Counted from the stretch's first letter, positions 5,043 through 58,001 are shown. The stretch is 64,000 nt of DNA from Bigelowiella natans CCMP2755 (GCA_000320545.1 ADNK01001509.1:74004-138003), one strand, 5' to 3'. Numbers and translations are program-made. Notes: generated by a model not told the origin, from the sequence alone.

Positions 5043-5099
5043 ATTTAAGATGTTGAATGTTGCCCAAGAATATATGATTATTAATATATGATAATTGAG

Positions 5100-5720
5100 T
5101 GTGTTACGCATAGCATGCAATGAGCGCACATGCACATCTCTTCACGCAACGCATGTGCACACAGCACATGAGCGCGGGCACGTCGATCCTGACTCTCCAG
5201 GTGCGTGTGTGGCATAAATCTGAGTGTCTGCTACATGCAACATCTCATCTAGATCGATCCTAGACATATCAAAAACATCAGCACTATTGCTTTGCCGGGC
5301 AGGAAGAGCTTGCATTGCGACTTTGTGACCCGCGGCGGTGGGGCGATGCGCTTGCGCATCGCATGCACTTTAAGGCTAAATAGATGGCCATACGAAGCAT
5401 GTGCATCGCAACAGCAAAAAGGGATCGAGCACCACTGCTTGCAGTAGAAAACGTAGAATTGAGGGTCATCTAGTCTAGTAGTTATGAGAGATTACATATA
5501 GAAGCTCACGTTGGATAGGGACAGTATTGGCTTGTCGTCTTAATGAGCGATGCATTGGACACAGAATGTGCTAGGCTGTGTTGCACCCATGCGCACAGCG
5601 CATATAATGAGTTGATATAAGTTAAAAGCTTGGGATGTAAAACACCTGTAGAGACATGTTATTATATAACAATAAGTTGGGTCTCTATACGTCACTAGTG
5701 CATCGCAATGCCTTGTGGCT
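5100..5720. other. Block B: palindrome-rich zone at a convergent junction
   Basis: Lies between stops at 5042(+) and 5831(-); rich in TGCA, CATG, CTAG and GCGC. Confidence 0.6.
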
Positions 5721-5830
5721 GCAGTTGGTCTGCCGCAGGCGGCTGAATCGGCAATAGCCTACGATACATCTCGATTATTTCTTGTGGACTGTTTCGTTTT
5801 TGGTACATTTTTCCTTCTTCTTTGAACGAA

Positions 5831-8308
5831 TCAGTAATCTTCTTCCGAAGCATCATCATCGTCATTATAATATGCACTGCAACTCCTCACAGCAGATTTC
5901 TTTGCGTCTACGTAGCTTCCGTTCAAAATCGCCTCTGCTAATGCACTTCCAACTGGAGCAGGGGCGATGCGAAAGCTATATCCATATGGACCAAAACTAG
6001 ATGAAGAACGAGTATGATGATTATAAATTGCAGCAATTAGTACAAAGACAAAGATGAAATTATCTACTGTCATTGTACTACCGTTCAAAGTTTTGGTGAG
6101 AAATGTAAGCTATCGCCCGATTACATTGCATAATCTCGCGCCTATACGAAGAACAACCATCAACGAGTAGCCACCATTTTGAATAAATCAGATCTTTACA
6201 TTCTCTGGGCTAGAAGGCACAACAAAGTCTCATTTTCTTCGTAGTCCTCCCTTACTGCCAATGAAATCCGGTACTCATTCTTCCTATTTGAGAGTGTTAC
6301 AGTGGATACAGCACGGAGCAAGTCTTCCCTGCCAAAACTTTCTCTCATCTGTTGATTAAATAAAATGGGGAATGAAGAAAACTCAGAAGTTTCTCGCATG
6401 ATTTGTGGAACAGATTTAAATGCCGGCGTCGGGGCACTCAATTCCTTTCAAAATTTTTATGATTTATGCAGGAAGGTGATGAAGAAGACGCTACCAGGCT
6501 TCGTGCAATTCGCCCAAACCATCTAAAAATGGTGTCTTTTGGTGATTCATCAACGTGCTGTAAACAGATAGGGCAATGATGAGACTCAAAAGTAGATAAA
6601 AACACAAAGATGTACAAGAGAGAGGATAAACCTTCCTGACTGTCAGCATCAAAGCACCACCTTGCGGCCTCCCTCCCCGTTCCGACAACAAACTGCCTAA
6701 AGTCTGTTCAACATTGCCCGATTAGGTGTGCGAAAGGTCTGCAATGCCAAGTTGTTTGACATATCTGCATTGTTATTGATAATTACTACCTTCTCTTTCA
6801 CGGTGTTGTGCACCAGAACAAGGTCTTCCCCTTGCAAGAGGCATGCGGATGCCTCCTGCCACTCCATAGCATCAAACTCATTATAATTGACTCGGTGATT
6901 TTCTCGGAAAAGTCCCCTTAGGCGGTGCGTCTGTCGCTTGTAAATTCCGTCTGCGCGCTGAGAGTATTCGGATTTCACGTGGTCGATGCATGCGTAGAAG
7001 GGCGAGCTTCCATCATACAAAATCTGAAGCTCGTTCGATGATTCTTTTCCCTCTTGATCTTTCTCTTGCTTGGTCTTCTGTTTCTCGCTAGGCACGGCTT
7101 CAGTGTACTGCGATGGCATTGTGTTGTTTCCATCAATTTCCAGATCATCTATTTTGTTGTTGATCTCCTCCTCGAGACTTACCTTCTCTTTGAAAGATCC
7201 AATGGTTTCATTTATCGCCAGCTTTTCATCTTTGCGTTCCTCTATTGTTAGAGCCTTGAGTCTCGCCAGATTTTCTTCCTCCGCCTCTCTGTCATCCTCT
7301 TCATCTGCTGTGAAGTTATAGCCGGGGAACATCCACTTATGCTCGTCGCGCTTCGGGTCGTAGAGGTCCTTCAGGTTAAGATCCCCTTTAACTTCAGGGT
7401 CTATTTGATCTAATAAGTTGCAACGCTCTGCTGTTTCCACAAGCCAGCGGTCCATTAAGACATCCCTCCGTTTCTTTGGCCAAGCAGCGGTCTCCTTTCT
7501 CGAGGGTACGTATGCTAGCGTGGACACCGCTTCATGCGGATACCCCTCCTGCTCCAGAAACCCCATGAACCCTCCTACTTCCTCAAGGTACTTGTTGACA
7601 CGTTGCATAGGTGTATCGTCCCCTGTGGACTCGAGCGGTGATTCGTAGTCAGATGGTACCCCTTCATTCGCTAGTCGCTCATACTCCTCACTCGTATCCG
7701 TTTCTGCGAAATTCGGAACGAACCCATCATCCTCCTCTTTTCTATGGGAAGCATCGGTGTCTACTTCATCCCAGCAACGATACTGCTGCCAATTATCCTC
7801 TTCAGTTTGCGTTGTGTCGGGTACCTCTTCTCCTCCCCCGTGGCCCTCTGACTTTGCACTGGGCAGAGATGCCTTCAGTATCAAAGGAGCGACGGTTGCG
7901 ACGCTGAACGATAAAATCATGGCACCTGCTCGCTGATAATCAAAACGGTTCTTATTTTTAGAAACCCTAGGGTATCTGCTCTGGATGCATGGAGCACTAG
8001 AGCATAGATCTTTTTCACCACCAGTGAGAAAACCGGCGTGCAGGCCATGGTGGTCATCCGGTTCCGAGGACGGCATACTTATTTGCAACTGTATCAGTCA
8101 TAGAAAAATTGAAAATGCATTAAAAACTTTGTTTACGAGCTCAACGATAGGCAAAAATCATTACAGTGTGTCTTCGGATGCCCCGCTCTCGCTTAATGCC
8201 TTCTGTAGCAATGAGCAGGACGAGTGAGATCAAAGAGGCTATGCACCATGGATCAGCCCAGTTCCTGCCTCTACAGGTTCTCCGGTTATTGTGTCCCCGA
8301 ACTCTCAT
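5831..8308 (-). CDS. Multi-exon hypothetical acidic protein with a signal-peptide-like N-terminus
   Basis: Exon 1 8308-8165 (MRVRGHNNRR...IASLISLVLLIATEG) splices in phase to the large exon 8088-6790. Small GT-AG exons continue to ...DDDDASEEDY* at 5831. No family recognised. Confidence 0.6.
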
Positions 8309-56173: not shown

Positions 56174-56459
56174 GAGTATTTTGGGGGGGGAAATTGTATA
56201 AAACATACATAGCTGTAAAATCAACTCAACTTTGTCCCCCTAAAATCCCTATATAAATATTTGTGTGAAGCCTATGTGGCGGATACGAGTTCAAATTTTC
56301 AGAAAAATCAGCTTTGAAATAAGCAGCCACTATTAAGGCTTAAGCAGTTCTGATTGACTGTAAGATTTTGTACCTTCTGTTATGTATACGCTGCGTTCTC
56401 TCTCTCTCTCTCTCTCTCTCTCTCTCTCTCTCTCTCTTGTAGTAATAATAGACACAATA

Positions 56460-57400
56460 GTATATGCTAGATGTGCAATGTGTAGTGTCTCTTTTTTGCA
56501 AGTTCTTCTGCATAGATCGCGTCGCATCGCATCGCATGTCGAACAGGTTCGACGATCGATGCTCCAACTATTGTGAACTTGTGCACTAGTGTAATGTCGC
56601 AAGCCGCTGCTTGTTATTTCCTGCTCAGATTGGATGCGAGCGCTTGTCGCTGGGTAGCTCTAGAGCTAATAAGTGACTACGTTTTTGCGCTGAATGCTAT
56701 AGAACTGCTCTACTAGTCTGCTGGTCTACGATACTGGTCTCGTCGAAGAAGGAGCCATACTACTAGACTAGCATAGCTAGTAATGTACGCAAAATTGATG
56801 AAATGAACATTGCGCGTAACCAATAAAGTCAATGCACGCCTCTACGTATACGCAAGCTAGAAGTGTGACCATGTCTATCATCTATTTATTGATCGAGGTA
56901 ATCGTTGTGCAGTTAATGTTAGCTAGTACGTTTGTTGCGACAATTAATTATATCTATCAGAACAGAAATGCATGCTAAAATGATCATAGTCGCCTGTGTG
57001 CTCTAGCGCTGTCTAGCATAGCTGATAGCTACCTAGCTGTGTTGTGCGATGAGACTGACTGTATACTGTACCAGTAGTGCGCGTCAGCGCGCGATGCTTG
57101 AATTCTAGAAGTCAGCTCTATAGAGCTGCTGTTGGTCTAACACTGTGGGCACGTACGACTTATGTATTGCATGCATTCTATGTAAGTACGTACAAAGCGA
57201 GCGCTAGCTCTAGAGCTGATATATAGCAATGAATTGCATGCGATTATATAAACAGACTGTGTCTACTATTGCGTCATTGGTGGAGGCATCACAAGAGCTA
57301 GGGGGCGCAGCCATCTCTGATCCACACAAACCAAGTAGCATGAGAAAGACATGAAGGTGCCATGCACGCTAGCACGTATTCCAAATATACTATTTTTTAA
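56460..57400. other. Block I: palindrome-rich zone at a convergent junction, flanked by (TC)n and (CA)n(TA)n
   Basis: TAGCTCTAGAGCTA (56655-56668), CAGCTCTATAGAGCTG (57113-57128) and AGCTCTAGAGCT (57206-57217). Confidence 0.8.
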
Positions 57401-58001
57401 AGCACATAAGCATTTGATGTATATGTTTTACACATCGAATACCTAGTTAGTCTTTATGCATACCAATAACATATACATCCACAACAACAAAAATTGACAC
57501 ACACACACACACACACACACACACACACACACATATATTTATATATATATATATATATATATATATATATATATATGTATCAATTGAAAATATTTAATCA
57601 CTTCATTACATCCGTCTCATATACACACATGTGCCGATGCGCATCTGGCTAGCTATAGAGAGATACGTATATACCGGTCAGGGCGAACTTGCTACAATGA
57701 TTTGCAACTAGACTACATTTCCAACTACAATGTACTGCATGCACATAATAGATGCACTTATATTATATATATATATATATATATATATATATATATATAT
57801 GTATTTTAATCAACCGGCCGCACCGAAAAATATATATATATATATATATATATATATATATTATAAACATATATGTTGTTTTTCTGTACCACATCAGCAA
57901 CTTCTCTCATTCTTTCTCTCACCAATGAAATAGTTAACAAATATGGTTCATCAAAGTTTGAACCTCTTTCTTTATCTGCTATCTGCGATCCCATCGATGT
58001 A

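Follow-up and report, generated by a model that had tools for sequence, protein, structure and literature searches.

CTAG insertion scars and alternating purine/pyrimidine sequence at convergent gene junctions of Bigelowiella natans: candidate footprints of a cut-and-paste element

What accounts for the palindrome-dense, non-coding sequence that lies between converging genes in Bigelowiella natans CCMP2755? The question was raised by a stretch of 64,000 nucleotides (GCA_000320545.1 ADNK01001509.1:74004-138003, hereafter the window), in which a sequence-only reading had marked eight palindrome-rich blocks at tail-to-tail gene junctions as candidate termination zones. The window forms the final 64 kb of a contig of 138,003 bp, whose other 74 kb were also analyzed, together with a further ~57 kb of loci that were returned by genome searches (scar-centered loci and loci of Harbinger transposons). 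We found the eight blocks to be real and to make up a sequence class of their own. They combine a diffuse bias towards alternation of purines and pyrimidines with an insertion scar, defined as CTAG between two identical 4-mers (a 4-bp direct repeat). The account that we consider probable, though well short of certain, is that such biased, low-constraint DNA at gene 3' ends has collected the scars of a cut-and-paste element.

The composition of the blocks was compared with the rest of the window by 4-mer counts. In the eight block intervals CTAG was 8.45x enriched, followed by CATG (3.15x), AGCT (2.94x), TGCA (2.5x), ACGT (2.4x) and GTAC (2.15x), and the richness in these six words that had been read from the sequence was therefore confirmed for each of them. 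TGTA/TACA, ATGT and TATG were also enriched, ~2x. Homopurine and homopyrimidine 4-mers reached 0.14-0.3x the level of the rest of the window, in line with the scarcity of homopolymer runs that had been described. Grouped by class, RYRY/YRYR words were present at 1.86x and RRRR/YYYY words at 0.37-0.46x. Alternating purine/pyrimidine steps made up a fraction of 0.59-0.66 in the blocks, compared with 0.44-0.49 at the seven divergent junctions that could be placed and 0.45 in introns; a weaker alternation was seen in a few introns adjoining (TA)n/(CA)n arrays. The divergent junctions carried 0-2 CTAG each and together a single scar (blocks versus divergent junctions, p = 1.6e-4 by Mann-Whitney test), and all seven of them lack a block, as had been claimed.

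Palindromes and repeats were analyzed separately. The observed/expected ratio of 4-mer palindromes was 1.1-2.45 in every 500-bp bin within the blocks, with a background of ~0.8, and the high bins outside the blocks were (AT)n/(CA)n microsatellites. Microsatellites and tandem repeats amount to 94 entries in the 64 kb and take up small parts only of the blocks. As an objective test, alternation was scanned in 300-bp windows with microsatellites masked, blocks being taken as runs of at least 700 bp. This blind scan recovered all eight blocks, which were the eight longest matches in the window. Perfect palindromes of at least 10 bp numbered 39, 3.5-fold more than the 11.2 expected from dinucleotide-preserving shuffles. 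They were present in seven of the eight blocks, and 23 of the 39 came from block 4. The earlier statement that most blocks carry palindromes of 10-17 bp thus stands except for its upper limit, the longest being 16 bp. A BLAST comparison of the 138-kb contig with itself gave microsatellite matches only, and so did three DNA searches of the whole genome with the blocks, which agrees with the view that the blocks are not copies of one element. The features are as follows (positions in the window).

4898..5797, no strand: block 1, spacer between a plus-strand gene (stop codon 5040) and a minus-strand gene (stop codon 6697); alternation 0.577; rho GC 1.65, CA+TG 1.5; one scar at 5471.
9848..10597, no strand: block 2, between a plus-strand HHH_8-domain gene (open reading frame, ORF, ends at 9914) and a minus-strand protein kinase (ORF 10933-11799); scars at 10088, 10178, 10362 and 10397, that at 10178 being a 12-bp palindrome.
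18398..19097, no strand: block 3, convergent junction verified by RNA; alternation 0.605; scars at 18548, 18625, 18670 and 18697.
18527..18559, plus strand: RNA contig 3' ends of the plus-strand gene, an approximate transcript end; contigs end at 18496, 18527 and 18559.
18560..18941, no strand: RNA-free gap of block 3, ~380 bp between both transcript ends.
18942, minus strand: poly(A) site of the minus-strand gene at block 3; three raw reads with untemplated T9.
28948..30097, no strand: block 4, the densest, downstream of a plus-strand flippase (P4-ATPase) gene; (CTAG)n arrays; 42 CTAG and 23 palindromes of at least 10 bp; without genomic copies; ten perfect scars at 29180, 29279, 29325, 29348, 29415, 29607, 29611, 29697, 29707 and 29711.
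35748..36597, no strand: block 5, downstream of a plus-strand PP1-type phosphatase gene; alternation 0.613; scars at 35844 and 36182.
46048..46747, no strand: block 6, between a plus-strand Glu/Gln-tRNA synthetase and a minus-strand protein kinase (Pfam on both flanks); alternation 0.608; scars at 46277 and 46306.
51548..52597, no strand: block 7, strongest alternation (0.62); 4 CTAG only and 0 perfect scars.
56348..57897, no strand: block 8, downstream of a plus-strand ACBP-ankyrin gene; right part consists of (AC)n/(TA)n arrays; scars at 56656, 56759, 57206 and 57365.
2843..3500, no strand: ninth block-like stretch, after the stop codon of a plus-strand FAST-kinase-like gene; alternation 0.604; scar at 2978.

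The scar was characterized by counting. In the window, 30 of 204 CTAG carry identical flanking 4-mers. On the whole 138-kb contig a perfect 4-mer repeat was found at 53 of 400 CTAG; for 11 control cores the proportion was 0.4-2%. When duplication lengths of 2-6 were combined with core lengths of 1-8, only the combination of a 4-bp duplication with CTAG stood out, at 20x, and core length variants of the scar were almost absent. The duplicated 4-mers themselves are diverse (36 different ones among the 53 scars). A target logo drawn from 108 scars has C or A at position 1 (87%), G or T at position 4 (84%) and G/C-rich sequence on both flanks. This symmetric target preference, C/A-N-N-G/T, is as expected for a dimeric transposase or integrase. 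One scar 12-mer, CATGCTAGCATG, occurs 3,828 times in the genome, its reversed control seven times. At 53 scars per 138 kb, the genome as a whole would hold tens of thousands of them. A search of the published literature for the scar, covering CTAG footprints and the termini of superfamilies with 4-bp duplications, yielded no description.

Evidence that the scar is an insertion event comes from two Harbinger copies that are 90% identical, L014 (filled) and L009 (empty), since they differ by exactly CTAG plus the four duplicated bases; this pair is a single example, situated at the border of the alignment. The 12-16-bp palindromes of the blocks are scars in palindromic targets (CATG, AGCT, TTAA), and scars within CTAG itself give block 4 its (CTAG)n arrays. 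After background subtraction there were ~0.4 one-mismatch duplications per perfect one, which fits recent or ongoing scar formation. Cores of CCAG or CTGG with intact flanks were found at 2-3%, other one-letter variants at no more than 1% except CTTG (1.9%); therefore CTAG is not immune to conversion of TpA. Near 3208-3230, CCAG and CTGG part a row of CATG units; the arrangement resembles two neighboring scars with TpA converted, one per strand.

The scars are strongly concentrated. Inside the eight blocks lie 27 of the 30 window scars, at a density of 3.5/kb versus 0.05/kb elsewhere (~70x), and 13 RNA-verified introns contained none. In three separate sequence sets the scar density climbed from 0 to ~1.8/kb with the alternation fraction. 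Scars were almost confined to windows with an alternation of at least 0.55, on the contig, in the Harbinger loci and in the scar-centered loci alike. Either the inserting agent prefers alternating DNA, or both features mark one silent, tolerant compartment. Scars were also detected in alternating DNA adjoining dead Harbinger transposons and on small repeat-rich contigs. The earlier suggestion of a mutational footprint confined to places where opposing polymerases meet is thus upheld in part: the footprint exists, as insertions and a variable TpA conversion, but its occurrence beside dead Harbinger copies and on small contigs speaks against the confinement. The ninth stretch, 2843-3500, is probably a tandem (+,+) junction, as further plus-strand coding sequence follows, and with its scar at 2978 it probably places scars at a tandem junction as well. 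Two scar-like 12-mers lie outside the blocks, at 7993-8004 (in the apparent N-terminal or 5' region of the minus-strand ORF 6700-8097) and at 34520-34531 (close to the promoter end of the PP1 gene). As ~1-2 chance matches are expected, these two may be spurious.

Are the blocks truly placed between converging genes? At block 1 both flanks were verified by long ORFs, at block 2 by HHH_8 on the plus and a kinase on the minus strand, at block 6 by Pfam matches to Glu/Gln-tRNA synthetase on the plus and a kinase on the minus strand, and at block 3 by RNA. At blocks 4, 5, 7 and 8 the left plus-strand gene was verified (flippase, PP1 phosphatase, long ORFs and ACBP-ankyrin, respectively). The claim that all eight junctions are convergent is therefore established from both sides for four blocks and from the left side for the other four. 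Pfam was run on 40 ORFs and was informative for about a third of them. The codon-usage strand map gives weak support only; it called 16-17 kb minus where RNA shows plus, because exons are ~50-100 nt long and introns contain microsatellites. Splice-aware counting of candidate introns was dropped, as it was wrong at 16-17, 19-20 and 44-46 kb.

RNA data were analyzed for positions 15001-21000. Eight GT..AG introns were found up to 18327, left of block 3, and five CT..AC introns from 19197 onwards, right of it. Mapping of poly(A) sites, which the sequence-only reading had proposed, was carried out for this block. A minus-strand site was located by the untemplated T9 just before 18942 in three raw reads, and one contig begins at 18942; on the plus strand the contigs end within 18496-18559. 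RNA depth was zero at 18601-18800 in all four runs, and the read depth of the plus-strand gene ends after the 18401-18600 bin. Block 3 is a true convergent junction with both transcripts ending inside the block, and the genes are single, spliced and individually polyadenylated within the block edges. Alternation sets in ~130-160 nt before either transcript ends and continues across the RNA-free gap. Inspection of the one mapped poly(A) site at 18942 revealed no sequence motif. The RNA contigs cover 18326-18559, including the scar at 18548, with zero differences from the assembly; therefore this sequence is not an assembly artefact.

Some further observations were made on gene order and RNA. 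Gene orientation apparently follows a near-strict alternation (+,-,+,-...) over ~16 genes, with a probable tandem pair only at 2.84-3.9 kb; if real, such an order differs widely from chance, which would give ~50% tandem junctions. On 15001-21000 the 2026 RNA library shows a strong 3' bias, its depth being concentrated in the last 300-400 nt of both genes, and it could be used to map poly(A) sites across the B. natans genome. In several introns of the flippase gene (25810-25970, 26829-26953, 27594-27692) a microsatellite starts right where the GT donor apparently lies, such as (GTA)n at 25810 and (TA)n at 26829. Intronic microsatellites are very frequent and include purine-only types that are missing from the blocks.

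We wanted to separate the alternation bias from the scars. After masking of CTAG neighborhoods and microsatellites, the alternation fraction was still 0.607 in the blocks and 0.480 elsewhere, and block 7 combines the strongest bias with 0 perfect scars. The bias is independent of the scars. At the dinucleotide level, rho in the blocks was 1.6-2.0 for GpC and 1.2-1.8 for CpA/TpG; ApT and TpA were raised as well, CpG and ApC/GpT were not, and all purine-purine and pyrimidine-pyrimidine steps were reduced. Lengths of alternating runs were near geometric (13 runs of at least 12 steps, 6.3 expected). Therefore the bias acts step by step and does not stem from long (YR)n arrays.

Several simple origins of the bias were tried and rejected. 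If the blocks were built from old scars, derivatives of CTAG by transition and the YYRR class should be enriched. They were not, and a signal at lag 8 was nearly gone once recognizable scars had been masked. Decay of (TA)n arrays through TpA hypermutation was discarded as the main cause on account of the geometric run lengths and of GpC lying far above ApC/GpT, unlike the prediction for a simple (TA)n conversion. An assignment to microsatellites or decayed simple repeats failed as well, tandem repeats covering small parts only and run lengths being near geometric.

A TpA-to-CpA/TpG hypermutation of viral and transposon DNA has been described in B. natans (Mettrop et al. 2026, bioRxiv 10.64898/2026.01.13.699255). 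Among 26 alternating regions on the contig, rho(TA) was inversely correlated with rho(CA+TG) (r = -0.92), and this published conversion sets the share of TpA versus CpA/TpG within the alternation bias. Hypermutated regions are defined by a rho TpA of at most 0.43 plus a rho CpA+TpG of at least 1.52. Such values were found only in the stretch 2843-3500 (0.27 and 1.96; 11 TA in 658 bp, 4 of them in CTAG) and in the Harbinger loci (rho TA 0.01-0.08). The blocks are not TpA-depleted, their rho TA being 0.87-1.48, and do not classify as hypermutated. The Harbinger loci L009-L014 are TpA-erased transposase relics in which the surviving TpA lies almost entirely in CTAG, NTAG and CTAN. Several of these CTAGs are scars with intact 4-bp duplications and are therefore later insertions. 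That CTAG seems to be spared in converted DNA may thus be due in part to later insertion instead of protection. The preprint makes no mention of CTAG, scars, palindromes or gene orientation (bioRxiv 10.64898/2026.01.13.699255). Its supplementary table on mutation-accumulation lines lists six de novo insertions that end in ACA (3, 4, 5, 5, 11 and 11 bases) and one multinucleotide change, TGGC to AACA; the ACA-ending insertions may represent a shared templated-insertion signature, unrelated to the CTAG scar.

How could the bias and the scars come together at these junctions? Each block would consist of the last 100-200 nt of both 3' untranslated regions (UTRs) plus a short untranscribed gap, all under low constraint. 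The diffuse alternation bias alone would enrich CATG, TGCA, ACGT and GTAC. On this background the blocks would be the main landing zone of an element that cuts with a 4-bp stagger at C/A-N-N-G/T in G/C-flanked sequence, and its departure would leave both target copies with exactly CTAG between them. A palindromic target such as CATG or AGCT would then become a perfect 12-bp palindrome, and a CTAG target a (CTAG)n array. Because the filler is constant and self-complementary and has hardly any variants, we propose a cohesive-end excision, in which the element ends in CTAG, is excised with 4-nt self-complementary overhangs and is religated without processing. Tail-to-tail junctions would tolerate a kilobase insertion, as no promoter, short intron or coding sequence would be disrupted. 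In addition or instead, the element may prefer the composition or chromatin of the blocks; in neither case would scars have accumulated for the sake of termination.

Several points weigh against an origin from such an element. In the ~195 kb scanned, inverted repeats with a 4-bp duplication gave chance matches only, and none was an element with CT..AG ends; one of the matches, L004:1409-2498, lies in ordinary genic sequence. The search for a piggyBac-type transposase was negative, families that have no Pfam model (Sola and others) being outside its reach. The Harbinger copies seen were all dead and TpA-erased, and the Harbinger family makes 3-bp duplications. Among the ~20 readable of 21 published de novo indels there were 0 scars, which carries little weight with ~0.5 expected by our estimate. 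This estimate takes ~35,000 perfect scars and 12 informative sites, which at a mutation rate of 3.46e-10 per site per generation gives ~1.5e-4 new scars per generation, or ~0.5 in the 3,132 generations of the lines (rate and generations from bioRxiv 10.64898/2026.01.13.699255). The right-hand minus-strand gene at blocks 4, 5, 7 and 8 is called from codon-usage scores only. The association with orientation covers this 64-kb window, one junction of which was mapped by RNA. Finally, the alternation bias may have a selected function.

Such a function was considered in its own right. The alternating zones could be selected, strand-symmetric elements of 3'-end formation or termination that serve both genes, with the scars as passengers; they might be rich in UGUA/UAUA-like efficiency motifs readable on either strand or act as nucleosome-favoring barriers. 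Their presence at all eight convergent and none of the seven divergent junctions would be explained. So would the position of the bias at block 3, where it starts before the transcript ends and spans the gap, its uniform, dinucleotide-level nature with no repeat relic and no dependence on scars, and the ~2x enrichment of TGTA/TACA, ATGT and TATG. Yet small repeat contigs and the surroundings of dead transposons have this composition too, and the sequence is free enough to accept many 8-bp insertions and a variable TpA conversion. The single mapped poly(A) site shows no motif, and the top alternating words (CATG, GCAT, TGCA, GCGC) are, to our knowledge, not known polyadenylation motifs. We consider selection for termination unlikely, albeit deserving of attention. 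A host process could likewise make the scar, for instance through 4-bp-staggered cutting by a nuclease or type II topoisomerase, followed by fill-in and addition of a fixed CTAG, in a setting of torsional stress building up between converging transcription units. The concentration of scars between converging genes and the missing parent element and piggyBac-type transposase are compatible with this, and a 4-bp stagger with a weak symmetric site preference fits the cleavage geometry of topoisomerase II. However, the plain 4-bp duplications that it predicts were not enriched (lag-4 3-mer identity of 37 in the blocks versus 36 per 1,000 in the rest of the window, scars masked), none of the known repair routes adds a constant CTAG, and scars adjoin silent transposon relics for which a position between converging genes is not evident, all of which makes a host process quite improbable. 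A combination, to which we give little credence, is that the alternating zones mark or enforce convergent transcript ends and that a host-encoded or domesticated enzyme makes the scars there, e.g. by 4-bp-stagger cutting to relieve or resolve conflicts; if true, this would be a new break-and-rejoin system.

The sequence-only reading had seen the blocks as termination or insulator zones with a base-J-like mark. Here CTAG and the palindromes would be sites of a DNA modification, base J or methylation, that stops RNA polymerase II (Pol II) at convergent junctions. The sites are indeed strand-symmetric and lie at convergent junctions, and the tendency of CTAG to survive TpA conversion could reflect protection. 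Of the enzymes that this mark would call for, genes for C5 DNA methyltransferases were found in the genome, but JBP/TET-type enzymes were not: a six-frame search of the genome, exon by exon, gave no match to Tet_JBP (PF12851), a weak negative as there was no positive control. One C5 DNA methyltransferase match, at G000:C1391:110667-111599, is full-length and intron-free (262 bits; open frame of 649 aa), and its type could be viral or bacterial. Against a modification stands that CTAG comes with a target duplication and so was inserted and not selected in place, that block 7 is nearly without CTAG, and that CTAG can be converted to CCAG/CTGG. The genes are also monocistronic with poly(A) sites of their own, and the most striking palindromes are by-products of the insertion scar. 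A base-J-like or methylation mark is thus very unlikely. Nor do we find it credible that the blocks are degenerate transposon copies or assembly artefacts. The unusual composition and the very short contigs that carry some scar-rich loci could raise such a suspicion, but the checks made on both counts went the other way: the blocks have no similarity among themselves or to the genome beyond microsatellites, and RNA contigs of three independent studies match the edges of block 3, one scar included, with no difference.

If the scars are excision footprints, B. natans hosts or recently hosted an extremely active cut-and-paste element, whose activity has remodeled most 3' intergenic DNA although the element itself is unannotated. 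Identification of the parent element could establish a new group of transposons or bring to light an unusual chemistry of excision. Every convergent junction shows the alternation bias, and promoters and introns do not. As a compositional marker of a genome compartment the bias is clean and can be tested; chromatin, replication or the biology of 3' ends could lie behind it, in a eukaryotic lineage that has received little study.

Among known systems, the base-J strand-switch regions of kinetoplastids resemble the blocks in their position between converging units and in the RNA-free gap between the transcript ends. They separate polycistronic units, whereas the genes here are monocistronic, spliced and individually polyadenylated, and the signature described here arises from insertions and a dinucleotide bias, with no JBP/TET-type match. 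Topoisomerase II-associated duplications of 2-4 bp are reportedly found in yeast top2 mutants and in the ID17 signature of human tumours. They have the 4-bp stagger in common with the scar, and enrichment is expected where transcription-driven supercoiling builds up; they are plain tandem duplications, whereas in the scar the copies are parted by a constant CTAG. With the hypermutation described by Mettrop et al. (2026) the blocks share the trade-off between TpA and CpA+TpG, and the stretch 2843-3500 and the Harbinger relics are fully converted; the eight blocks, in contrast, are not TpA-depleted. Transposon footprints remain, as left by Tc1, Sleeping Beauty and Minos, which in their canonical form consist of both target copies and a few terminal transposon bases. 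Unlike these, the scar duplicates nearly any sequence and not TA or TTAA, its filler is one invariant self-complementary 4-mer with almost no variants, and tens of thousands of scars in a 91-Mb genome go with ~195 kb scanned without a parent element. In common with these footprints, the scar has a duplication of fixed length around a constant filler, a symmetric target preference, filled and empty sites that differ by the filler plus one duplication, and an accumulation where insertions are tolerated.

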